From Podarcis filfolensis (taxonomy: Eukaryota): a stretch of DNA of 64,000 nucleotides. This document shows positions 1 through 62,168 of the stretch, one piece after another. Made by a program: the position numbers and the translations under genes. Under the pieces are notes generated by a model that ran no database searches, was not told where the DNA came from, and saw nothing but the letters and a program-made list of their open reading frames with translations. Each line of letters opens with the position of its first letter. Position 1 is the stretch's first letter. Where the stretch lies: NCBI GenBank assembly GCA_964270895.1, contig OZ185446.1. One strand, 5' to 3'.

Positions 1-30
1 AGTAGCCTATTTCCTTGTTCCTTTTCCTAG

Positions 31-71
31 AAAAAGAACTTTGGAAGGAAAAGGTTGTGGTTTATGAAAAG
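31..71 (+). other. Candidate 41-nt internal exon, probably 5'UTR of an upstream KIAA1217 transcript
   Basis: A strong polypyrimidine tract and acceptor (tttccttgttccttttcctag, 10-30) is followed by a purine-rich 41-mer and an AAG|gtacaa donor. No homology recognised. Confidence 0.3.
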
Positions 72-395
72 GTACAATGTATTTTTTTTTTAAAAAAATA
101 TTGCTTTCTTTCATGCATTTGGTTACTGGATAGAAATGGTTGCATGTCTGAGGTTCCCCTGCCGTCATCCACAATTCCAATTTTGTTCTTCAGAATAAAG
201 CACTGCCAGAACTTGTTCACTGACCTAAAGCAGCTGAGGCTTCCCATAATACTTCTTAGGGAGCTGACAAACAAGTATTTTGCTGCTTCGTGGGATGCTA
301 CATCAATATGATGTTTACTTCATAACAAGCACGGTTAGAACTCAGAGGTTTAGTGGAGTCTGGGGGCACACAGACAGACAGACAGTCAGACACGC

Positions 396-423
396 GTGTG
401 TGTGTGTGTGTGTGTGTGTGTGT
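396..423. repeat. (GT)n microsatellite
   Basis: Perfect dinucleotide run. Confidence 0.95.
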
Positions 424-1694
424 AGTTGTGGAAAGAATATCATGGCTTTAGAAATCTCAAAAGCAGATGAAAGGAGGACGGATGCTCGGGGGATGGCAGG
501 GAGAGACCTGTAGTGGCAAAGAAGTCAGGAGCAGAATGTGTATGGCAGGGCCAGGGAGGAACATTAATCTCCTAAGGGAAATTAATCACAAAATGAGACA
601 AGGCTTGGGAAGCAGTGAATGAAAAACAACAACAACACAAACCCCAGCAACTACAGGGTCCAGAAACTGACTTGTCAGCTGCCCTTGGCCTTTTTGACCC
701 ATTAATGAGAGGATGGAGCCATACAGCATATTTTGCCAAGTTAGACAGCTTGAAATAGAGCTTTAACTATTTTAAGTTCCAAAGTGTGTGTGTGTGTGAG
801 AGAGAATATACTAGGTTCGTATTTCAGAAAGAAGGAAGCTGGGGATTGCGTTTGTGAGATGACCTCCTTGCACAGCCACCTTTGCCAGTCTGGTGCCTCT
901 CGCTGTCTTGGGCTGCAACATCCCTTGGCATCAGCCTGCATGGCCAATTTGTTTGGTAGCCCCAGGCAGCACAGGAATAGTCGGCACCTCTCCTTGTGGG
1001 TGAAAAGATGGCAAATATATTTTAAAGATTTCACAAAAGGCCTGGCTATTGCAGGGTTTAGAAATACTTCTCAGCCCATCAGAGGTTTCTTGTTTCTGGT
1101 GGAATGGCAATTAAAGTAATAGTTTGGAACACAGTCATATTGGGCCTTCTTGTTTAGCACTGCGGTGAGATCACCTCTAACCCTAGAGACAACTTGGCAT
1201 TATGACTATGCAGTAAACTGCGAGTCAGAGAGAACACGGAAAATCAAGAAGAGAATAAGAATTGTGTTACTTGGTCAGACCAAATGCCCGTCTAGTATAG
1301 CACTTGGGTTCTTACAACTAGATGGCCCAAGAATCTCACAAACAAGTCATCCTCTATCCACAACATCTGCTAACCTACTAACGATGGGTACTCCATTTAG
1401 CTATTATGGCTAGTATTTGCTCTCCGTCTTGAACGTATCTTAATTCTTTTGAAAGCCATCTGCGCTAGTGACGATCGCAACATCTTGTTTCTAGACCAGT
1501 TCCTAGTGCCCTTCAGATGTTTGGGACCACAACTCCCTTGACCCCATAGCCAGCATGACCAGTGATCAGGAGTTGTAATATGAGTTGTAGTTCAATACTT
1601 GCCTGCTTGGTTGCTGCTATTTTTGTAGCTGCCTCTTCTGGTTAGGAAACAAAGTGCCCTATAGCTGGTTGCCTGAACATTTCCCTGACCTGGG

Positions 1695-1823
1695 CTTCTG
1701 GTTGTAGGATGCTTTGCTTCTCATAACACCAAGGCTCCTGGTTCAATCCCTGTATATTCCTGCCTTGCGGGGGGCTGGACTAGATGATCCTCAGGGCATC
1801 TTCCAACTCTGTGATTCTGTGAT
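1695..1823 (+). mobile_element. Degraded tRNA-derived SINE with CR1-like 3' tail
   Basis: B-box-like ggttcaatccc followed by the typical tail ggggctggactagatgatcctcagggcatcttccaactctgtgattctgtgat. Confidence 0.6.
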
Positions 1824-2703
1824 ACTCTATCTGCCTGCTGCCCCATCTGTTTGTCTCCTAGGAACAGCCAAGCAAAATGGGGCAGAGGACCGACATAGCA
1901 GCATTCCATTTGTTGGCCTGCTCAAGACAGGCATTAGTACAAAATGAGAGCTCATAGCAAATCCACAGTATTTTGAAGTCCTTTTTAAATTATTAGGTCA
2001 GTCTTCAGCCTAATACTTCAGATCTCAGTTATGCAAATGTTTACGGTGGCAACAGGGAGAGTCGCTTTCTCAGACTGGAAAAACACATTTATTGACTCAT
2101 GAATTTTCAGAAAGTATGCGATAACTAATATTAATCTCAATAGAGTTCTGCACTTGGCTGACTTAAATATTTTTTCCCAATCAAAATACTGCCATTTATG
2201 CTGTCAGTCAGAACTGAGCATCCAACTTCATATACCCTTTATTTGAGGGGAATAACAGAAAAGAAGTATGTGAAAACACATCGGGAGTATTTAATAAACA
2301 TTATTGGAAAGTAAACAGTTGTTCTGTTTAATCCTGTTTTTCCACATACGGCACTTGTAACAAAAGAAGACTTTATCCTTTTAGTTCTTATACCTTGTAT
2401 CCTCCCTTTTTGAAGGAGTGCATAGTAGCATTTTACTCTCACAACAACCCTGTAAGGTAGGTTGTGCTGAAAGCTGGAGGCTTTCCAAAAGCCACCTAGG
2501 GAGGATCATAGTACCTGTTGGGGGGGGGGGTTCCAAACCTGAATCCTGCAATTAATGGGACTGAACGGCCTATGGATAATTTATTTTTTAATTTAATTTT
2601 CCTATATGTATAGCCTGCCTTTTTTCTGTCATGGAAATCAAGGGTGTGGATATATGGCTCCTAGGTGACACCCATACTTGCTTAGGTTCAGCAAGACCAT
2701 ACC

Positions 2704-2871
2704 CAGTGGCGTAGCGTGGGTTGTCAGCACCCGGGGCAAGGCAAGTAATTTGCACCCCCTAACCCGTGGATTTGCGCCCCCTAACCCGTGGATTTGCGCC
2801 CCCTAACCCTAACCCCCAGATGTTGCGCCCGGTGTGGCCGGCCCCCCTGCACCCCCCACGCTACGCCAGTG
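2704..2871. mobile_element. hAT-type MITE with internal 22-bp tandem repeat
   Basis: TIRs cagtggcgtagcgtgg / ccacgctacgccagtg (1 mismatch) and a perfect 8-bp TSD accatacc (2696-2703, 2872-2879). Confidence 0.85.
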
Positions 2872-3597
2872 ACCATACCTTGAGTGACTGCATTGCAGTG
2901 AGTTGGACTAGATGGCCTTTGGTGTCCCCTAGAACTACAGTTCTATGATCCTGTGACCAGTACTTTGCCACTGTCAATGAGTCTGAATAATTCTACTGCT
3001 TTCATATTGACGTCAGTGGTGGAGTTTACCATAGGCTAAACCAGTGATTCACAGTTTCCCCCCCTGCATGTACCACTTGAAAATTTTGAGGGTCTTGGCA
3101 GACCAGTTAATGGGTTCTCTGCTTGTTGACACACTTGCAATGTGCTGTGCTAGATGCTGTAAGATTTTTAATTGCATTTTTATTGCATTGCAGTTTGAAT
3201 TTTGTTGCTCCTGCCGTTCTTCACAAACACAATAGAATATTTGAAGCCATGGGATTGCACCCCTGTTCCCCTCTCCTGGCTTTCGTTTCCCCTGCCAGCC
3301 TTAACCAGGGTTTCCTCTTACATTTAAGCAGGAACCTTATTTGTGGTAACTGTGGTTACCATTCGTGAAACACAGCTAAGTCAGGGGTGGGAGATTCTCC
3401 TCTGAGAGATGGGAGGGACGGGACGGGCTGTGTCTGGTTGTTCTACCATGTGGATCAAAGCTACTGCCATTGCAGAATCTCCTCTTATGGCTTTTCCAGA
3501 GTTGTCATTCTTCTGTTCCATCAACTTTGCCATGCTGATGAACAGAGGATATTCTCATCTGTCTCACAGTAGCCATCACAACTGAATGGAACCCCAG

Positions 3598-3708
3598 CAT
3601 GGGTGCAGCCAGCATTTTTGTTAGGGGGAGCAGAACCTCAGTTAGCTATGTATTTTTATCTATTTTTATTGATTTAGGGGGGCAGCTGCCCCCCCAGCTG
3701 CGCCCATG
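3598..3708. mobile_element. hAT-type MITE
   Basis: TIRs catgggtgcagc / gctgcgcccatg and an 8-bp TSD aaccccag / aaccgcag (1 mismatch). Confidence 0.75.
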
Positions 3709-4187
3709 AACCGCAGTGTTTGTAGCATACCTCTGAACAGCAGGTCCTGGCGATGACAAAAAGGGAATGCTTATTTGGGAGTTTGCAGAGACATCTGACT
3801 AGCTATTGTTGGAAGCTGGCTCTTAGACTACCTTCTTCTTCCTTTGAATATAGTATGGCAATTCTTCCATTTATAAGTTAGCTACAACATCAAACAATAT
3901 TTTGAATCTCCATATAAAAGGATCTCAGATAACAAGGTTGAGAGATCTCATTGCATGAAACCCAGTGAGCTATTGTCACTCAAGATACCGAGCTAAATGG
4001 ATTGCTTGTCTCCTGCATGTGCCAAGGTTAGCTCTTTTTATCCTTAAAATATAGGAACAAGATCAAGTTATAAAGGTGGGGCTGTGCCAGGATGAAATCT
4101 ATTATCAATTCCAATGCCTGCTGGGGTTTTTTTTTTTAATGACCTCATGGCTTCATTCCTTTAGAGCAAATATTGTGCTTAGCTGTA

Positions 4188-4540
4188 AGGTAAAGGTAAG
4201 GGGACCCATGACCATTAGGTCCAGTCGTGACCGACTCTGGGGTTGTGGTGCTCACCTCGCTTTATTGGCCGAGGGAGCTGGCATACAGCTTCCAGGTTGT
4301 GTGGCCAGCATGACGAAGCTGCTTCTGGCAAACCAGAGCAGTGCATGGAAATGCCATTTACCTTCCCGCCGGAGTGGTACCTATTTATCTACTTCTACTT
4401 TGATGTGCTTTTGAACTGCTAGGTTGGTAGGAGCAGGGACTGAGCAACAGGAGCTCATCTGTTGCGGGGATTCGAACCGCCACCTTCTGATCAACAAGTC
4501 CTAGGCTCTGTGGTTTAACCCACAGCGCCACCCGCGTCCC
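4188..4540 (-). mobile_element. Sauria SINE, full length
   Basis: tRNA-related head at the right end (reverse complement gggacgcgggtggcgctgtgggttaaacc), ACCTTT-type tail at the left, and TSD tgcttagctgta (4176-4187, 4542-4553). Confidence 0.92.
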
Positions 4541-5147
4541 ATGCTTAGCTGTAGACTCGAGCAAATGTTACAGGCTCCAGAAAAATGCCAGGGAACAGGG
4601 CAACCAACTTTTAGGAGCATGATAAGGAAAAACGCTAAAGTAGGAATGCATTTGTTTGAAATGGACATCTGGGTATTGAATGTAGTGACAATGATCCCTT
4701 TGCTCAGATGTAAACTGCACATCTGGATTGCGATTTCCACTCTTTTACCTTGCTAGGTGAGGCAGCCTTATTGCACTGTATGCCTGCCCAGCGGCAGGTC
4801 TTTACATGCCAGAAGATGCTCCCCCCACGTAACTGTTGCTGACAGAGCATCTGTTTCTCGCTATTGGTTTGAAATTCCACCAGTGAAGAACAGTTGTCTG
4901 TTTTTGTATTGCAACATGCATTTACATTCCACAGGTCTGGTAAATCTTACTCTCTGCCACCCAGCGACTTTTATTTAGAGCATATTCCATCAGCAGGCAC
5001 TGCAGTTTAAATGCAGCTGCACGGCACAGATTCTTCACAGTGGTGAAGTCTGCTGAAAAAGGAAGAAAGATTTTGGATTGGTTTTTTTGTTTTGCTCTGT
5101 GCATGCTTGCCCTGTGTATCATCAGGTAACATCCCTGCATATTCACG

Positions 5148-5367
5148 ATGTCCAAACCTTCTCGCTTAGCCAGACCGCTGTCTACTAACGCAGCATCTAG
5201 ACTGCCTTTGTCTAGGAAAGAAGACTTTAGTGGCAAAATGAGGAAAATTAGTTTAGGTGAAAAGATTTTGAGAGCTGGCAGTGAAGGGAACCTGATTAAG
5301 CAGCAGCAGCAGCAGCAGGTGCAAACCACAGAAAGACTTCTTTTGCGGAGGGCTCCAATTCTGAAAG
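5148..5367 (+). CDS. KIAA1217: Putative alternative first coding exon of sickle tail protein homolog (73 aa + phase 1: MSKPSRLARPLSTNAASRLPLSRKEDFSGKMRKISLGEKILRAGSEGNLIKQQQQQQVQTTERLLLRRAPILK)
   Basis: ATG has A at -3, an in-frame TAA lies at 5127, and the open frame runs to a strong donor AAG|gtaaag (GT at 5368). The splice phase (1) is the same as for the canonical first exon at 62099-62168, on the same strand. Gene assignment rests mainly on position and phase. Confidence 0.7.
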
Positions 5368-7088
5368 GTAAAGCTCTGTTTTTCTCTCTTAAATGAAGAG
5401 CCCGGCAGATTAGAGTTTTTTGGAATGAGGCAAACTACCTTTAATAGTGCAGCCACAATTACAGTGTAAAGAAAACCGGGGAGATAAAAGATTGATGTTG
5501 TGTTGGCAGTGCACTAACTGTGCTTAATAAGATCTTGTAATAGCAAAGGTATTTTGTCTGTGGTTTAAACCAAGACTTGCAGGCTGAAAAAGTTAATGAT
5601 CCACAAGGGTTAGTAATGCATGTATCACTCTTCACAGCTTTATTTATTTTTTAATGAACTCTTAACTTACACATTGTACAACTTCAAGGGTTATGAATAA
5701 ACGGATGCTGAAAATGGGATGTGAAATTGTGAAATAATGTGGAAAGGATGGAAGGTAATAAGTACATGGCGTTCTCTGCTGGACTGTCTCATTCTGCACA
5801 GTGGAGCAAAACTGTAGCTCCCGAATCCAGCAAACCAGCTCTGAAAAGAAATACCACAGACAGAAGCATTTTGAAAGGTGCAGACCTGCAGGGAATGAGC
5901 AAAGACGCTTGGCGAAGTAGTGGAATAATGAATACTCTTACACATCTCCTGATCTCCTGAACGAGATACTTGAGAAACTGTAGTGTGATAGGCAGCGTTT
6001 TCCCCCTGCAATTTATAACCAGTGGGAAGTGGAGACTTCAGTTGTATTATGAATCCTAAGGCTGGATTTGCAGGGCGTTATGAAATAAGAGCATCAGTCT
6101 CCTAAATGATTTCCCCCTCATCTTTTAGTGGCCTGGGGGTGGAGGTGGAAAGGAACCCTTTCCTTTCATAAATGGCAGCCAATTTCGCTGTCCATTACAA
6201 GCAGTTAAATCACAGACTTTGGAACTTGAAACTGTAGAGGTTCACTTTATGCACACACACACACATGGAACATCAAAAGCTTATAGGTTTTGTTGCTATT
6301 CTGGACAGGATGTTTTTCAACCGTGGTCCCCGCCTCCCCGGCTTGCCTGTTGCATGATTTTTGTTATTAAGAAGAAGGGAGGTGATGACACTTTATATTG
6401 CCTAGTGAGATGGACAGTGTGTTTGTACCAAAGGCTCTCTGGGACATATAAAAGACAGGCAGAGAAGCAAATGGCAAAACACTGCTTTTGGGGAGGGAGC
6501 TTAAAATGTCTGATCTTGCTTGTAGCGAAATGTGCATATTTGGCAGCTGACATGGACACTTCCCTTTGAAGATGAGAAAGAGGCTAAAAATCTTTGTTTT
6601 GAGAAATAGCAAGGTAAAAATAAATTCTCATTAGTAGCAGTACCCATCCATCTCTCCATCTGCACACCAGGCGGACTTGTAATTTGACTGTGGGATAGAA
6701 GGTAATGTTGAAATTTACCGAGGTTCCCCCACCCTTTCTTATCTGTGTTGTGTTTTCTACCATTTTTTTTTTAAAGCTACTCAGACAATGCCTTAAAAAA
6801 TTGCCTCCTCTTGCAGCTCCTGAAATGTTGCCTTATGATCAGAAAGTTGCAGGCCTTTCCCCAGTGCTGAGTTTTACAGAATATTAAGTGATGCTTTTAG
6901 GGAACATGACTTTTATGAAGCTCCTGAGGCATGCTTCTACCTGTTGCAGCTCAAGTGTTTTTAGTGCTACATAATATTCTATGATGAACAGCGATGGCTA
7001 GTACAGACTGGTGTTTTAAATTTGCTCTTAAAGCTCCTGTAGAAAGAAAGAAGAAAAAACACACACCCAGTGGCTAAAAGTCAAATGG

Positions 7089-16821: not shown

Positions 16822-17166
16822 AGGGTGGTGCTGTGGGTTAAACCACAGAGCCTAGGGCTTGCTGATCAGAAGGTTGGTGGTTCGAATCCCCGCAACGGGG
16901 TGAGCTCCCATTGCTCTGTCCCTGCTCCTGCCAACCTAGCAGTTCGAAAGCACGTCAAAGTGCAAGTAGATAAATAGGTACCGCTCCGGCGGGAAGGTAA
17001 ACGGCGTTTCCGTGCGCTGCTCTGGTTCGCCAGAAGCAGCTTAGTCATGCTGGCCACATGACCTGGAAGCTGTACGCCGGCTCCCTCGGCCAATAAAGAG
17101 AGATGAGCGCCGCAACCCCAGAGGCAGCCACGACTGGACCTAATGGTCAGGGGTCCCTTTACCTTT
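16822..17166 (+). mobile_element. Sauria SINE
   Basis: Canonical head-body-tail (ccctttaccttt) flanked by the direct repeat taaagacagggtgg (16815-16828, 17166-17179). Confidence 0.92.
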
Positions 17167-20100
17167 AAAGACAGGGTGGGTAGCCTCTCGGTCGTCCTGC
17201 TAGGGCCCTCCTGATTGGATCCTTGGGACAGAAGGGGAGGCGGAGACTCTGCACACTTCTAGTGGAAACAGCACAACAAACAAATATAGTAGAATTCAAC
17301 AGCGGCAATTGTTCATGTTTCAAAGCTATCCTTTCAGTTAATAATATACATGCTAATAACTTGGGGGGGGGGGAGGGCTCAGCTGTACCAGGCCCTAATA
17401 CAGTGTATGCCAATAATTCTGCCCCTGACCAGCAGGCTAAACTGCTGCATGGCACTGTCTGCCCTCGATGTCACCTGCGCATTAAGTTACAGTAAAGGAG
17501 CCAGGAAAAACCCCAAGCTATGAACTTGCTCCTTCAGAGGGAGTGTGACCCCATCTAGAGCAGGCTACACACCACTCAGCTCAACAGAAAAACCACCCAC
17601 TAGCAGCATCTCACTTTTGTCTGGATTAAGCCTCAGGTGGATTTTTTGTTTTTGTTTTGCCTCTCAAGCTGTCCATGATCACAATCCAGCACATCTCCTG
17701 CCTCACCTGCAGAAAATGAAAAGGAGAAATAGAGCCGCCTGGCATCAGCATACTGATGACAATGCACTCCAAAACTCCGTATGACCCCCCCCTCAACATT
17801 TTCATATGTAGGTTAAGCAATGTGGGGGCAGATCTGACTCTTGCGGGTCTTCATGCTGGAGAACCCATGCAGCTAAGCAGTGCTCCTCAATAATCACTTT
17901 CTGGAGTTGACCACTGAAGCAGAGGGGGGACCACCACATTACAGTGTCCCCAGATACTCAGCTGAGACAGAAGACCACTAAGGTTGATGTTGTTGAAAGC
18001 TGCTGAGACATCAAAGAGAATCAACAGGGTCAGGGTCCCCCTTTCTCACTCCTCCTAAAAATGGATCTAGATTTTTTTTCTGAGTCCTTCTCTTATGCAT
18101 TCTGTACTTTCCTCCACTTCTGCCTCTGTTCACTCCCTTATTATATATACATTTAAAATTGGCCACTCTATCTCAGATACATGAGGAAGGAAAGCATTTT
18201 CCATAATATTAAACCTTTGGATTATATGACAGATATCCTCTCCATCTTCCCCTTGCCCTGAAAATGGCTTCAACTGAACATGTAAGAAGCAATAAATTTT
18301 AGGTGCTGTTTATTTGTGTTTGTGTTGCTTGGGCTTTTGGCGGCCTGAGCTCTCCCCCATTCCCCTCTTATCAAATCCCAAGGACTCCAATCTCACTGTT
18401 TAATAATGAAATGTGGTCTGACTTCTGCACATAATTATTTGGCTTCAGGACTCCTGTGAAAAATATTAGGTTGTTACAAGACATAAAATGAAGAGATTAT
18501 TAATACACCGTAGATGTATCAAGGAAATCCTTGATGGAAGGTTTGTTACATTCAGGATCTAAGGTAGCACGTTCCTCTTTCTAGATGTGATTCCTTCCAA
18601 CAGCAGGAACCTGGAAGATCTTTACCTTCTCACAGAGCAGTCCTTTACTCTTGAAACTTTATAGTCAAGCTTGATCCAGACCAAGTGATATATGGCGGGA
18701 GCCGGGGGAGAGCATTCTAGGCCTCTTCAGGCATTCAGAAATAATGTGTAAATATCAAATTGGGGGTGAAAAAGAGGCAGGCAAACCAGGTATGCCCATT
18801 CCATTCCCAGCCTTCCTGTGTTGAGCAGGAAGATCTGAAGGGGGCTTCTACGTGTGTACAGCTGAACATGAATATTCAACCGAACGTTCAGACCTTGCAA
18901 ATAAATTTGTGAAGGACAGAGATAGAGTGGGTGTATCTGCTGTGTGCATTTTAATATTGGGCCTGTGCTGTGCCATTTGCAGTGTTTATAATGATAGCTT
19001 TATTCTGAAGTGCCTTGAGCATCTAGCATAGGCAGAATATGCACATAACACAAAGTAAATCACAGAAAATGTGATTTATACTAAAATCCCGCCATTATTT
19101 CATCTGCAAAACTAGTCCTGGTGGATGAAAGTTACTTTCATTTTCTAAAATGTTCCTTGATGGCAAAGCAACTGGTATCTTTAGTTTACCAAATAAAAAA
19201 TGTAGAGCCAGGAAGCAGAAATGTATTGTGGCACTTACCCATAATACACTTATTTCAATAAGTAATTTTCCAGATGCTGGTTTCGTGCGTGTGACTGACC
19301 TGAAGTGGATTAAGAGAGAAGAGGCTAGGTCAGCTGAGACACTAGTTGTTTTGGCATTTGTATCTTCACCTATGCATTAGTTTCTCTTGGTCTGCAGTGG
19401 TATTCCAGAAACAGCGTTCCACTACTTGGTAACAGAAGGCAAAGGAGCCCTGTCTGCTCTGCTGGGTTGTTGAGTTGCTCCTATGAGCTGAGGGTTGCTT
19501 AGGGGAATGGGAGATGTATTAGAGGGCCATCTTGAAGAGCAGCAGCAACGAATTCATCCTCTCATTGCTCAGATGCATACTGTTGATGCAAATGAAGAGA
19601 AAGCTTTGACAAGTAGTTTCCACACACCCTTGAATTTGTGCCTCTGCTGGGAACTCTCAGCAGGAAATCCTCCACATGTTTTCCTTTAACGTACAGCAAC
19701 TTAAGAGAACCGTCTCATTCTGATTCAAATATCTGCATGTAGCAGTAACATAACCTAAGCAGGGCGATGATAAATGTCACTGCCGATAAAAGGAGCACAG
19801 TGATTCGACTGGAGTGAATATTCAGCCATATAACACTGAAAAGAAGAAATCTTAACAATCAACACTCGAGGGCCCTTTAAAAAGAGTAAGTGTGGCTACA
19901 TTTTTGGTATGCTGAAAAAGGAAACTCTTGAAGATGTTGAAACGATTCCTCTACATCCCCAAGGAGCAAAGCAAGGCTGTTACTGGATGCTTTACATTAC
20001 TCTGCTAATTCTGGCTTATTTTAACGGGAACAAAAAAATCTGGCTTACTTTAACAACAAAATTGTAAGTAAGTTTTTTAAATACACAGTTTTTACTTTGG

Positions 20101-24880: not shown

Positions 24881-24950
24881 TATTTATTTATTTCTGAAGC
24901 CCCGGAGAGAGAGATATAAGTTAGGATATTTATTGTACTTGTGTACAGTA

Positions 24951-25306
24951 AAGGGTAAAGGGTCCCCTGACCATTAGGTCCAGTCGTGGCCGACTCTGGG
25001 GTTGCGGTGCTCATCTCGCTTTATTGGCCGAGGGAGCCGGCGTACAGCTTCTGGGTCATGTGGCCAGCATGACTAAGCCGCTTCTGGCGAACCAGAGCAG
25101 CGCACGGAAACGCCATTTACCTTCCTGTTGGAGTGGTACCTATTTATCTACCTGCACTTTGACGTGCTTTCGAACTGCTAGGTTGGCAGGAGCAGGGACC
25201 GAGCAATGGGAGCTCACCCCATCACGGGGATTCGAACCGCCAACCTTCCGATTGGCAAGTCCTAGGCTCTGTGGTTTAACCCATAGCGCCACCCACACCA
25301 CCCGCG
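24951..25306 (-). mobile_element. Sauria SINE
   Basis: Canonical sequence with flanking direct repeat cttgtgtacagtaaa. Confidence 0.92.
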
Positions 25307-29838: not shown

Positions 29839-31032
29839 TCCCCATGTTGATGTTGTCTGTGTTCAGATGTGACACTTAACTGGGGTTTAACATTTCATCA
29901 ACAAGCCTTGGACTCACAACTGTGCCCCTCCCCTGCAATTCCAGTATAGCTGTGAGGAGAAGGGCAGAAGTTTTGGTTTCCATTTCCAAGTAGCTGCTTT
30001 TTGTCATTGTGTTCAAACCAGGACAAACTTCAGATTGTGGGTTCTGGTGTTGGCCTGTTATCCTAAGCCATAGTTAAGATCAGCCACAATTCCAGGTCCA
30101 CGCATAACAACAAACCATGGTCAGTTGAAAATGAAATGATATTTTCTCCTCACAGCACTGTCCCATGATGAAGTGGGGCAGGAACTTCCAAACCCTGTTA
30201 TTGTCAAGGAGATGGTAGTGGCAATTACCACATGGGAAAGGAGGGGCTGAGAGTAGAAACAGCAGACCCTGGTGTAAATCATTGCTATTCAGTGTGTGAT
30301 GAAAATCCAACCAACACACTTCATTGTAAAGCAGAAAAGAACATGATTAGGTCTTAAATGAGCACGCAGCTACTCTAATGGGGATGCAATGACCTAAAAT
30401 TAGAAATAAAAACATTTTCCAGTAGGTGCAAATATTTGTAATATAAATGTGTAGCTGACGTATGCCAAGTTTTTTTTTATGATTTCACAGCTGGCTTCAA
30501 CATCCCCACGTGCAATGCTATTGATTCAGGGCTGCAATCTTGGCATATTCATGCAGAGAGCAGCAATTCAACATGTGAATGACCTTGCTCAGTTTTAAAA
30601 GGAACAAATGCTATGGAAGGGCTTGTAGTGTGTGGCAGGATGTTTAATCAGTTTCATTGCTTTAAGGAACAGTAGGAAGGAAATGGTGTGTTAAAGATTG
30701 TAACTCCTTATGCATCTTAACTGGCTACACCAGGATCTTAGGACAATGGGAGATCCATCCCCCTCCCCAAAGGAACTTCCTACAGCCCCCTCTATTTTTA
30801 GATACTTAATGGCATTGTCCTTTCACTGCTAACTGTTTTTCTTCTCTGCTTCCTGCCCCCCGCCCCCCGTTTTCTGTCTTCTGGTTGCCCTTTTAAGGTC
30901 TTGCCCATGTGTTTATATCCAGGATAAATTATTTACATTACCAGTTGGGTGCACATTTTCACAAGGGAAAAAGATAAAGTACACATGTGTAAATCCACAA
31001 TCTATCAGAATGTATCTTTAAAATACTACATT

Positions 31033-31353
31033 AAAGGTAAAGAGACCCCTGACCATAAGGTCCAGTTGTGGCCAACTCTGGGGTTGCGGCACTCATCTTG
31101 CTTTATTGGCCAAGGGAGCCGGCGTACAGCCACTTCTGGCAAACTAGAGCAGCGCACAGAAACGCTGTTTACCTTCCCGCTGGAGCGGTACCTATTTATC
31201 TACTTGCACTTTGATGTGCTTTCAAACTGCTAGGGTGACAGGAGCAGGGACCGAACAACGGGAGCTCACCCCGTTGCGGGGATTTGAACCGCCGATCTTC
31301 TGATCGGCAAGTCCTAGGCTCTGTGGTTTAACCCACAGTGCCACCCGCATCCC
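31033..31353 (-). mobile_element. Sauria SINE with internal deletion
   Basis: Canonical sequence, but it lacks the roughly 30-nt cttccgggtcatgtggccagcatgactaagc segment present in other copies. Confidence 0.9.
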
Positions 31354-34984: not shown

Positions 34985-35361
34985 GATGTGGGTGGCACTG
35001 TGGTCTAAACCACTGATCCTCTTGGGCTTGCCGAACAGAAGGTCGGCGGTTCGAATCCCCACGATGGGGTGAGCTCCCGCTGCTCTGTCCCAGCTCCTGC
35101 CAACCTAGCAGTTTGAAAGCATGCCAGTGCAAGTAGATAAATAGGTACTGCTGTGGCAGGGAAGGTAAACGGCATTTCCATGCGCTCTGGTTTCCATCAC
35201 GGTGTTCCGTTGTGCCAGAAGCTGTTTAGTCATGCTGGCCACATAGCCTAGAAAGCTGTCTGTGGACAAACGCCGGCTCCTTTGGCCTGAAAGCGAGATG
35301 AGCTCCACAACCCCATAGTTGCCTTTGACTGGACTTAACCATCCGGGGGTCCTTTACCTTT
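34985..35361 (+). mobile_element. Sauria SINE, divergent subfamily
   Basis: Head and tail are canonical. It carries the diagnostic extra segments ctggtttccatcacggtgttcc and gctgtctgtggacaaacgcc. Confidence 0.88.
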
Positions 35362-37821
35362 AGAACTGTCTTACACAGGTGAGCAATTTCAGTGGCCTTC
35401 CTGCATCTCTGTGCTATTCTTAGTCTGTCATAAATTACTTTCCCTGCCTCTACATCTACTTTCCTGCTATTCCATTTTCTTCTTTCTTCTTTTTCTTTTT
35501 TGGGCCAGTTATACCTCAACCTTGTGTGTATATTTTATGTTCCAGATTTGCCAGCGTATTTTGATTGTCAGTCTTACAGCATTCTAAGTCTGTTTATGCA
35601 GAAGTAAGCCCCCTGTGTCTAATGTCGTCTATTCCCTTGTAAAGTGTTTACAGACATAATCTCTAGTAAATGATTGTAGATCAGGGATGGGATAGGACAT
35701 AAAGTAGTCTAAAACTCTGTATATTGAAAAGTATCAACAGACTTTTAAATAAAAACGAGGTCTTAGTATGTAGCTTTAGGCTATATTCTCTCTCTATGTA
35801 TATATTTATGTATTTCTGGAAGAAAGGAAATGGCAAATACAGCATTCAGTGATTTGCCAGTGAGAGATTATTGTGTGTTAACCCTAGCACAGAACATCAG
35901 ATATCACACCAGGCTCACTATGCAACTGCCTCAGACAATTGGAATGTGTTTCATTATCTAGAAACCAGGATGAAAGGCAACTGGCAGTCTTGCTAGTCTG
36001 AACATTGTGATCGTCACCACCGTCTAAAATTTTTTGAATTCTTTTTGGGTGCTTTGGCAAGTCAAATAGTTCAGTTCATAGGTCTGTTACAGGAGCATGA
36101 ATGGCACACACTCTCAAAGTTGTGGTAACTCAGATAAAGGCCTTGTGAAGCATAGGTTTTGTTTATCTTAGCAGATTATAATTAAACTAAGTGATTCAGA
36201 GACATAATGCCAATGATCTTTACAACAAGGTTCAAAGACAAACACTTAAACATTTCAGTGTAGTGTAGTATCAAAATACTGTTTTTTATTTGCGCAATAC
36301 GGATAAATACTTTTCAAAATGAGACCAAAAGCAGAGGACAATCCTAGTTGAGATCCAGAATCGCCATTCAAGCAGAGTGCAGAAGAAGGCTCGTTTATTT
36401 TGGGAATGATTCATGTTCTTATGTAGCTGCAATGATTTATACTTTCTGGATGTTCCATGATCATATTATAGAGTAGTTGTGTTCTATGTTATAAATCAAG
36501 CTCTGCTAGGAGTTTTTTCTTTTTGTTTTCCAACGTATTTCTTATCAGTAAAAAAAAAAAATTGGTGTGGCATGAGCAAATTTTTATTGTAAAAGTGTGG
36601 CCCAGAGAAAAAAGTTTGGCCTACGCTGTGCACAATACTACCATACTTCCTTCAACTCTCTCAGAGACTACTTTCTGTCTCCCACAGAGCTGGACTGAAG
36701 CTGGGGCTACCTTTCAAGGCCATGCAAATCCTAACAGATGCATGGCATACATAGATGACAGCATTGCAAGGACATGTGAGAACATAATATGTGATGTTTT
36801 AGGACCTAAATATATATTTTTTTATCCAAAGAAATCAATATATTATTTCCCCCCAATGACTGAATTTCACAAGAATGATCTTTAATCTGAAACCTAATGA
36901 GGTAGCATTGCCTACCATATGGATATAAATTTGGCTGTTTGGGCATTCGGGTCTTGAGGGTTTTTTGTTTGTTTGTTTAAGATTACATCGTGTGCTCTAA
37001 ACATGTTGTGAGCTGCCTTAAGAGTTCTAAGCAGGAGAGGACAGAACACTTTTAATTAAGAATGCACTGGAGGCTGTTCAAAAGAGCTTTGCATTCTGGG
37101 GAGATGTTTTTGGGAGGCAAAATGATAAGTAGCCGGGATGGGATGCAGAATAAGCCCTGGTACATGTTTAGAAGATGCATCAATAGCCTTTTGTGCCCTT
37201 ATTTTAATAAATAACCTTGTCCAACAAGAGCTCTTTGCTTTGTTTGAGATTATCTTGCGCTTGGAAATGTATACTGATATTATGTATTTGGGGAACAAAC
37301 ATTCAGAAATAATGCAAACTTAACATTTTAGCATTTCATATTGATGCATAAATGAGGCTGAATGGACTTAATGAAGAAACCATGTGAAAACTGACATGGA
37401 TTGGAAATAGAGTGATCATGTCATTTCTGTTCATAACAAGCCACTTAAATTATGAGGTTGGTTTGTAAAGTAACCAGAGTTTGTTTTTAACCAGAATTCT
37501 TGGTTTGAATGTAATACGAAATTGCCATTCGGTAAAAGGAGAACTAAACCGTTCCATTCCAAACTGTTCATCCTAGCTGTGCAGCGCAAGGAGATTGGAG
37601 TGGGAGAACGTGCCATCCAAATACTTTAGCTGAGCTCAATTCAGGCTTGTCCACATAGCTCGTAAAAATGCAAATGTGCCCCTGACCAATACTATCAGGA
37701 CAGTCAGCTTCAAACTCTACCCTATCAAAGGCTCTGTCCTTTCAGATGAGCCGCCTCATGAGTAGGCCTGGAGATCCTTCCCAGTGGCCAGTTCTAGAAG
37801 CTTGTCATTGGCCTATTATTT

Positions 37822-38180
37822 AAAGGTAAAGGTACCCCTGACCGTTAGGTCCAGTCACAGACGGCTCTGGGGTTTCTCGCTCGTCTCGCTCTATAGGCCG
37901 AGGGAGCCGGCGTTTGTCTGCAGACAGCTTCTGGGTCATGTGGCCAGCAGGACTAAGCTGCTTCTGGCAAACCAGAGCAGTGCATGGAAACGTCATTTAC
38001 CTTGCCGCCGGAGTGGTACCTATTTATCTACTTGCACTTGACATGCTTTCAAACTGCTAGGTGGGCAGGAGCTGGGACCAAACAACGGGAGCTCGCCCCT
38101 TTGCAGGGATTTGAACTGCCGACCTTCCAATTGGCAAGCCCTAGGCTCTGTGGTTTAAACCACAGCACCACCCACCTCCC
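37822..38180 (-). mobile_element. Sauria SINE
   Basis: Canonical sequence with TSD tggcctattattta / tggcctagtattta. Confidence 0.92.
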
Positions 38181-59036: not shown

Positions 59037-60944
59037 GTTTCCTCCGCCCCTTTCTCCTGAGCAGCTTTGCAATACTTTTTGCTCAACAGGTGCCAATGTA
59101 CCTTTGAGTAGGCCTGTGCGAGTGGTTTGATGCATGGATACCAAAGAAGGATGTAAAAAATGCCGGAATGGCCAGTTCCTAATTCTTTGCTAAAGAAAGG
59201 GGCAAATGTACAACGCAGCCTATAAAAACCCCACTGCTGTTACAGACGCAGGTCAGACACTGCAGCAATGAGAGGTCGTCTTCGCCAGGAAAGCATTCAT
59301 TCATTATGTATACAAAAGACAGCATATGTCAGTTTGGCAAGAACCTCCTGTCAGTCCACCTGCCGATGAAGGCACAGGGGGCAGGTATCCAAGTCTCCCG
59401 GCTAACTCCCCTGCCTAGGCCAAGAACCAAGTTTCCCAAACCTACAGATAAGCACAACATTAAAGCAAGCCAATTAGCATACATCAAAGCAAGTGTGAAT
59501 AAACTTATTGAGCTCATCCTTGCAGCAACTACCAATTAGTCTTGAGGTTACCTTAAGTACCAAGATGGCGTTTGCAGGCCTTCCAGGTTCAACATACCAG
59601 TCAACCCAGTTCTTGTCGATTTCCTTGACATTTGGGGCAAAACTTCCATTTCACAGCAAATCTACACATTTCATCCTGCAAGTTTGATTTACTCAACTGT
59701 AGTAGAGTTGCCAACATTTTTATCGACACCTGTTTCTGTGTCTCTCTTACTGCAGTGTGACCTGATTAGTGGACAGTAATGCTTATTAGTTGTCTCCATG
59801 CAATGGGCATTTTCACCAGTAGATTTTCTGTATAGCAAGCTGCTGTTAAGTGCATAGGGGAAGGACAGAGCGTTTCTTAACTGGTCATGTGGCAAGCAAC
59901 CCTAAAAGTAAGGTGGCATTTGCCAAAGTTCTTGACTTACTAAGCCATATTAGCATCATTTTCATGTCATAGTAAACCATACTATGGATTACTGGGAGTG
60001 CACAGCACAGCAGCAAAGCCAAGATTTAGCTTAATGTGCCATTCCAGCTGGGAACTGCAGTTAAGGCCAGTCCTCCTTAACCATGACCTGTAACCATAAG
60101 ACAAATCATAAGACAGATCACGGTGAAAGAAGAAGCGATCTCAACCACGATCCTGGTTTCTGACAACACGCTAAATTTAGCTGCTGTGCTGCACTGTGCT
60201 AAAAGGCCAGGAAAGAGCAAAGTGAGTGTGAGCTTATCTCTGGGCATCAACCCGTTTGTGAGGACCCAGTAAGCCATAGCTCCTGCTTTGTGCTTCCCCT
60301 GGCAAGAACAGATACTGTGAATAAACCAGGAAAGGGATAGGTTTTCTTTATATCTAAACAATGGCTCATGCTTTATTTTACCCAGCAAACCACAATTGCT
60401 AGCTAGCCTTAAACCATGTTTTGCTGTTGGCTTGCTGAACATGGTTTGTTAAGGTGAAACAAGCAATGATCCTGAGTTCAGTTGTAATGCTAATTTATCC
60501 CCTTCCTAGTTTTTCTGGCTTCTTCTGCCAGAGAGGAGCAAAGTGGGAGCAATTCAGAATGCTGGTGATGACTTAAAGCCACCAGGGATATGGGACTCCA
60601 GGTGTTGTTGGACTCCAATTCCCATGAGCCCCAGCTAGCACAGCCAGTGGGTAGGGATGATGAGAGCTGTAGTCTAGCGACATTTTGAGGGTCAATGTTT
60701 TCTCAGCCCTGCCTTAAGAACTGTCTGAACCCATTTCAGAGACCCTGTTAAAATGTCTACCTTTAAAAGCCATTCGATCAGTGGGCCTTTTCAGTGGTGG
60801 CCCCACAATTATGCAATCCAATTCCAAGTAAAGCCAGGTGAGCCTTTTTCCTTTGCCAGCTTTAAATGGGCCTTTAAAGACCCATATTTTCATCGTCACC
60901 TTTGTGGGGCTAATCCAGGTTACCAGATACTGTTCTTTAGAGCT

Positions 60945-61295
60945 AAAGGTAAAGGGACCCCTGACCATTAGGTCTAGTCGTGACTGACTCTGGGGTTGTG
61001 GCGCTCATCTCACTTTATTGGCCGAGGGAGCCAGTGTACAGCTTCCAAGTCATGTGACCAGCATGACTAAGCCGCTTCTGGCAAACCAGAGTAGTGCACA
61101 GAAACACTGTTTACCTTCCCACCAGAGCAGTACCTATTTATCTACTTGCACTTTGACGTGCTTTCGAACTGCTAGGTTGGCAGGAGCAGGGACCAAACAA
61201 CGGGAGCTCACCCCGTCGCGGGGATTCGAACCGCCGACCTTCTGATTGGCAAGTCCTAGGCTCTGTGGTTTAACCCACAGCGCCACCTGTGTCCC
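60945..61295 (-). mobile_element. Sauria SINE
   Basis: Canonical full-length sequence. Confidence 0.92.
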
Positions 61296-62098: not shown

Positions 62099-62168
62099 AT
62101 GGAGGAAGCTGAGAGCCAGAAACCTGAGCCGCTCCTGGCTTGTCCGAGAGACAGCAGACAGATGAAGG
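62099..62168 (+). CDS. KIAA1217: First coding exon of sickle tail protein homolog (MEEAESQKPEPLLACPRDSRQMK + phase 1)
   Basis: Aligns without gaps to the recalled human N-terminus MEENESQKCEPCLPYSADRRQMQE (same 70-nt coding length). Strong Kozak acaATGg and consensus donor AGG|gtgagt (GT at 62169). Too short for the ORF track. Confidence 0.9.

Follow-up and report, generated by a model that had tools for sequence, protein, structure and literature searches.

The stretch from 5148 to 5367 on the plus strand of the 64,000-nucleotide piece of Podarcis filfolensis DNA analyzed here (the window) is very probably orthologous to a conserved exon that serves as an alternative first coding exon in KIAA1217/SKT, the gene for the sickle tail protein homolog (Etl4 in mouse). 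Its predicted peptide opens with MSKPSRLARP, and starts of this type are already known, being built into hundreds of public gene models, many of them from birds and fish. The other ('canonical') first coding exon of the gene, which is referred to here as the MEE... exon, is found on the same strand 57 kb downstream. The features on which this assignment is based are as follows.

5148..5367, plus strand: probable coding part of the alternative first coding exon of KIAA1217/SKT (the MSKPS exon), from sequence, orthologous ORFs, and annotated proteins
5301..5318, plus strand: (CAG)6 run encoding a Gln run inside the exon, from its coordinates and from indels in alignments
5368..5373, plus strand: predicted 5' splice site GTAAAG after ...AAG, from sequence, DNA and protein alignments, and annotated proteins
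62099..62168, plus strand: predicted other ('canonical') first coding exon with the start MEEAESQK, from sequence and matches to bird N-termini

Anatomy and coding constraint of the MSKPS exon

The coding part comprises 220 nt, corresponding to 73 codons plus one base, and ends in phase 1. The start ATG is located at 5148-5150 and is preceded by an in-frame TAA at 5127-5129, seven codons upstream. At the other end the exon closes with ...CTGAAAG and the intron begins with GTAAAG, the GT being located at 5368-5369. An upstream in-frame stop, 73 open codons, and a phase-1 end had all been named in a preliminary description of this DNA and are found as described. The same description had credited the exon with a good Kozak context and a strong AAG|gtaaag donor, and both statements hold in part. 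The ATG has an A at -3, and a purine is kept at this position in seven of seven orthologous contigs, but +4 is a T and the context is therefore adequate and below optimal. The donor is present and conserved, but a consensus G at +5 is absent in every species compared, which makes it a good rather than a strong site.

The 73-residue peptide was used in a word search, which yielded 21 short orthologous ORFs with identities of 58-80% and E values down to 1e-25, among them one annotated in the frog Ascaphus truei as a 73-aa 'hypothetical protein'. Overall, the peptide ranges from teleost-like and bowfin sequences to birds. Frame and donor, the conservation of which was looked for in related species, are both conserved. 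In the protein alignment, all sequences share Met1, residues 1-10 and the core RKISLGEKILRAGSEGNL hardly vary, and the similarity breaks off at a Gly (G74) that never changes and represents the G|GT codon read through the donor. At the DNA level, five species share the donor GAAAG|GTAA without a difference, and similarity drops sharply directly beyond it. Indels within the exon are multiples of three and cluster at the Gln run at 5301-5318, the length and content of which differ between species, and the frame is open in all species. Pairwise dN/dS is 0.15-0.5 over the exon in all 10 pairs and 0.07-0.30 over the first 52 codons. The orthologous genomic contigs compared were restricted to sauropsid-like, amphibian-like (L006), and fish-like (L008) matches; P0011 (220 contigs from metagenome sources) and P0014, which may derive from human DNA, were left out of the alignments, and the other mammal-like short ORFs (P0013, P0015-P0021, P0027-P0033) were viewed as proteins only. 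By these comparisons, 5148-5367 is a protein-coding exon under purifying selection.

The 73-residue N-terminus is basic and Ser-rich and probably disordered. It contains a conserved RKIS sequence, which we take to resemble a site for basophilic kinases. A Pfam scan of the peptides of both exons (5148 and 62099) returned no family. Among the short ORFs, a 54-aa ORF from a close relative (P0035) starts only at an internal Met (MRKISL...) and, like the window sequence, ends by reading into the intron (KGKALFF); either its contig has no sequence before the internal Met or a stop is present upstream of Met31.

Annotated proteins and the junction with exon 2

A length-free search aligned the peptide with residues 1-73 of a 1399-aa protein (P0023, E 1e-21), which is isoform X10 of the 'sickle tail protein homolog' of the hoatzin Opisthocomus hoazin (XP_075275651.1), and with residues 1-68 of a 2029-aa protein (P0026), which is isoform X4 of the 'sickle tail protein homolog' of the bowfin Amia ocellicauda (XP_066574406.1). 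The identity of the window peptide is 73% to the hoatzin sequence and 63% to the bowfin sequence over 68 residues. Conversely, residues 1-76 of the hoatzin protein fall on 5148-5375 in a tblastn search. The 'sickle tail protein homolog' of the coelacanth Latimeria carries the peptide at residues 73-132, with 72 residues ahead of the MSKPS Met. When the word search was carried out with the hoatzin protein restricted to residues 1-73, 254 full-length SKT/KIAA1217 proteins were found to carry the exon, the underlying gene models in other species being mostly automatic predictions. Every listed one among these proteins has PF03915, and all of the 119 that were checked among the matches listed begin with MSKPSRLARP. 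Under the name sickle tail protein homolog or KIAA1217, they are deposited in RefSeq, GenBank, and UniProt, and they include dozens of bird species; UniProt entries for KIAA1217 with the MSKPSRLARP start exist for zebra finch, canary, and junco. Among the annotations examined, the notion that many of them may lack the exon is not borne out, as these 254 annotated proteins carry it, whereas the accompanying expectation that predicted isoforms of other vertebrates may include it proved right, since models from birds, bowfin, and coelacanth start with it or contain it.

The SKT isoforms of hoatzin, bowfin, zebra finch, canary, and junco resemble the exon in the window in several respects. The N-terminal 73 residues correspond, the exon ends at ...LK before a shared exon 2, and it precedes the MEE... 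exon with the strand in common. Divergence from the known SKT isoforms (hoatzin, bowfin, finch, canary, junco) is found in the Gln-rich middle and in the last ~15 residues.

The annotated proteins switch to exon 2 exactly at the MSKPS donor. In the hoatzin protein, the ...LLK of the MSKPS exon is followed by DQAKNSLHVTS..., and among the isoforms of woodpecker, plover, and sparrow the starts MSKPSRLARP... and MEE(N/K)ESQK... both run into DQAKPSLHVTS.... The pattern recurs in the bowfin models, where the starts are MSKPS... and another, short one. The following classes of N-termini in birds were read from 90%-identity clusters that hold several isoforms of one species.

Class 1: MSKPSRLARP...FLK, joined to DQAKPSLHVTS
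Class 2: MEE(N/K)ESQK..., joined to DQAKPSLHVTS
Class 3: MPHGR...REL, joined to DQAKPSLHVTS
Shorter forms from internal Mets: MQTSEMDRK..., MSEGDSP..., MQREIAY...

Class 3 represents a third bird start exon, MPHGR...CREL, which encodes 21 residues (P0190, P0209) and uses the common exon 2; sought in the window by tblastn, it gave chance-level matches only. The proposal of mutually exclusive first exons joining the same exon 2 is thereby supported by orthologous models of birds and bowfin. Both of the two alternative starts originally described were found, but the number was set too low for birds, which have at least three alternative first coding exons.

The MEE... exon has its ATG at 62099 and comprises 70 nt, i.e., 23 codons plus one base, followed by the donor AAGG|GTGAGT. 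N-termini of the bird type MEE(N/K)ESQK (P0186, P0207) match 62099-62167 on the plus strand with 75-77% identity and E values of 2e-9 to 3e-10, and this sequence match confirms 62099-62168 as the predicted MEE... start of KIAA1217/SKT. Its phase 1 is as stated previously. Both exons bear an ATG, end in phase 1 with G as the last base, and lead into a common exon 2 in bird models; because of the shared phase and final base, the split codon is identical whichever exon is used. They differ in that they have 23 and 73 codons, respectively, lie 57 kb apart, and encode peptides without sequence similarity, which agrees with the earlier notion of unrelated N-termini.

In transcripts containing the MSKPS exon, translation would start from the ATG at 5148. 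The donor at 5367|5368 would be spliced to the shared exon 2, which would begin with (D/E)Q(A/G)K..LHVTS beyond the end of the window, and the MEE... exon at 62099-62168, as the start of the alternative isoform, would be skipped. The predicted product is an SKT protein in which 73 residues replace the 23-residue MEE... start and the downstream part is unchanged. For P. filfolensis, we infer the splicing from 5367 to exon 2 from the orthologous models. To look for exon 2 and other SKT exons within the window, the first 450 residues of six full-length proteins were used in tblastn searches; only 5148-5375 was matched.

Two readings that would detach the stretch from KIAA1217/SKT have to be weighed against this evidence. 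According to the first, the ORF arose by chance, or the stretch is conserved as a non-coding element and merely open, without contributing to any protein. ORFs of similar size are indeed common nearby: between 4000 and 6500 there are 20 ORFs of at least 40 aa, including one of 135 aa across the same place on the opposite strand, so that the size of the 73-codon ORF is not above chance. The lack of a Pfam domain and of RNA depth in the examined runs would also fit. However, chance does not account for the invariant Met, the frame-keeping indels, a dN/dS well below 1, the end of similarity at the donor, and the use of the exon in hundreds of annotated full-length proteins. The exon is regarded as real because of its conservation across species, not because of ORF length, and the non-coding reading is hardly credible. 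A separate small gene upstream of KIAA1217, of which the MSKPS exon would be the only exon or one of several, is also highly improbable. Two de novo annotations contain stand-alone or differently joined models, namely the 73-aa protein of Ascaphus truei and a 507-aa 'hypothetical protein' of Columba livia. However, the Ascaphus model consists of nothing but the exon, with 84% of its length matched by the window peptide, and the Columba model flanks the exon with sequence that resembles no other match. RefSeq and Ensembl/UniProt models from dozens of species join the exon to exon 2 of SKT, and the conserved phase-1 donor implies a further exon downstream.

The significance of the orthologous first coding exon lies mainly in annotation quality, in that the P. 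filfolensis genome has a conserved start of the MSKPSRLARP type; if the species' own annotation is without the MSKPS exon, its addition is warranted. A search for papers on an isoform-specific function of the MSKPS N-terminus found none. Since a strongly constrained N-terminus of 73 residues is thus without a functional study that we could find, work on SKT isoforms in adhesion, at centrosome and cilia, and in the intervertebral disc should separate the N-terminal isoforms.

The upstream region: own promoter or internal exon

Two conserved features are located upstream of the ATG.

4920..5020, plus strand: conserved non-coding block, 130-230 nt upstream of the ATG, from alignments; candidate core promoter or regulatory element
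5124..5131, plus strand: conserved CAGGTAAC motif, 17-24 nt before the ATG and containing the TAA at 5127-5129, from alignments

The block at 4920-5020 contains CATTCCA (4925-4931), TTTAAAT (5006-5012), and CAGCTG (5014-5019), and conservation of its CATTCCACAGGTCTG part with the M-CAT-like CATTCCA extends to the amphibian-like contig L006. The block is a possible promoter or enhancer for the MSKPS isoform. Within the CAGGTAAC motif, CAGGT(A/G) at 5124-5129 is found in all six amniote-like sequences, in each of them after a T-rich tract, and is not found in L006 (amphibian-like) or L008 (fish-like), both of which contain the exon. Possible roles of the motif are those of an acceptor (CAG|) or an alternative donor (CAG|GTRA), and it may also be no more than conserved 5' UTR. 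CpG o/e around 5148 is 0.35-0.38, and there is no CpG island at the exon at 5148 or at the one at 62099; a local rise in CpG near the MEE... exon is due to a repeat copy ~800 bp upstream.

We lean slightly toward a promoter of its own just upstream of the MSKPS exon, and feeding from upstream exons may occur in addition. A TATA-type promoter with a start near 5040 and a 5' UTR of ~105 nt containing an 8-codon uORF from 5103 would suit the arrangement. This uORF begins with an ATG in frame with the main ATG, stops at the TAA at 5127-5129, and is not kept in the aligned contigs.

It is possible, though doubtful, that there is no promoter at ~5.0 kb and that the stretch is an internal coding exon, reached by transcription from one or several far-upstream non-coding exons, possibly outside the window, and spliced at an acceptor at 5126|5127. 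Such an acceptor is suggested by the CAG at 5124-5126, which is conserved behind its T-rich tract in the six amniote-like sequences, but the GT(A/G) that follows is conserved as well and would be needless for an acceptor, and the amphibian-like and fish-like contigs have the exon but no CAG. An internal position would also agree with the lack of a CpG island at 5148 and with the coelacanth model reaching 72 residues upstream of the MSKPS Met, whereas the block with TATA-like TTTAAAT and E-box 130-140 nt upstream of the ATG is arranged as in a core promoter. No loose ends of RNA reads are seen at 5127, at a depth of ~0. A precedent is provided by the cDNAs of mouse Skt/Etl4, in which the first coding exon is joined to three non-coding exons from as far as hundreds of kb upstream (PMC4683868). 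The mouse gene has several promoters (PMC4683868). It is alike in being a large gene with several tissue-specific transcripts, which have been ascribed to different promoters and to far-upstream exons (PMC4683868). In contrast to the MSKPS exon, the upstream exons 1-3 described for mouse are non-coding; the first coding exon is exon 4 (PMC4683868), which may be of either the MSK... or the MEE... type. The in-frame exon 5 of mouse encodes 96 residues (PMC4683868), the same length as obtained by hand counting for the shared exon 2 of birds.

A third use of the motif, as a working alternative 5' splice site in the 5' UTR of amniotes, is improbable. With splicing from CAG|GT(A/G)A, the MSKPS part would be dropped, exon 2 would be joined directly, and translation would start at the internal Met of MQTSEMDRK, a start that is also listed in bird annotations. 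If this were true, one promoter would toggle between full-length and N-terminally truncated SKT.

RNA reads and repeats in the window

A search for sequencing runs containing this sequence listed DNA sources and none recorded as RNA. Reads were taken from raw-read RNA runs of a near-identical species, the DNA of which contains 86% of sampled words. Positions 1-6000 of the window were compared with two bulk RNA-seq runs (~12% of each read) and with two small contig runs. In both bulk runs the depth over 5001-5400 is ~0, and at such depth neither a joint nor a loose end is seen at 5367 or 5127; this near-zero depth at the MSKPS exon is too low to count against expression or splicing. The two contig runs, for which the label RNA is a guess, each provide a single short contig that lies within the exon and is free of errors (5135-5308 and 5156-5306), and no contigs in the unique flanks at 4601-5000 and 5401-6000. 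This exon-only pattern fits RNA or capture data. Nearly all RNA reads matching positions 1-6000 are partial matches to interspersed repeats at 1600-1800, 2700-3000, 3600-3800, and 4187-4541.

The last of these belongs to an interspersed repeat of ~350 bp, of which the window contains seven copies with 73-100% identity, located as follows.

4187-4541
16823-17167
24948-25294
30132-31353 (region)
34990-35362
37821-38180
60941-61295

This repeat is very abundant in the RNA runs in the form of partial matches. Seven such copies within 64 kb are more in keeping with a squamate genome than with that of a bird. Scans of the 64-kb window for tRNAs (ARAGORN) and with Rfam returned nothing, the repeat included. 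The consensus of loose ends beside 4482 has a tRNA-like GGGGATTCGAACC box, which suggests that the repeat is a tRNA-derived SINE. At 1600-1800, 2704-2950, and 3600-3800, many partial RNA reads with numerous mismatches are found; each of these stretches occurs once in the window, and they are probably members of other repeat families.
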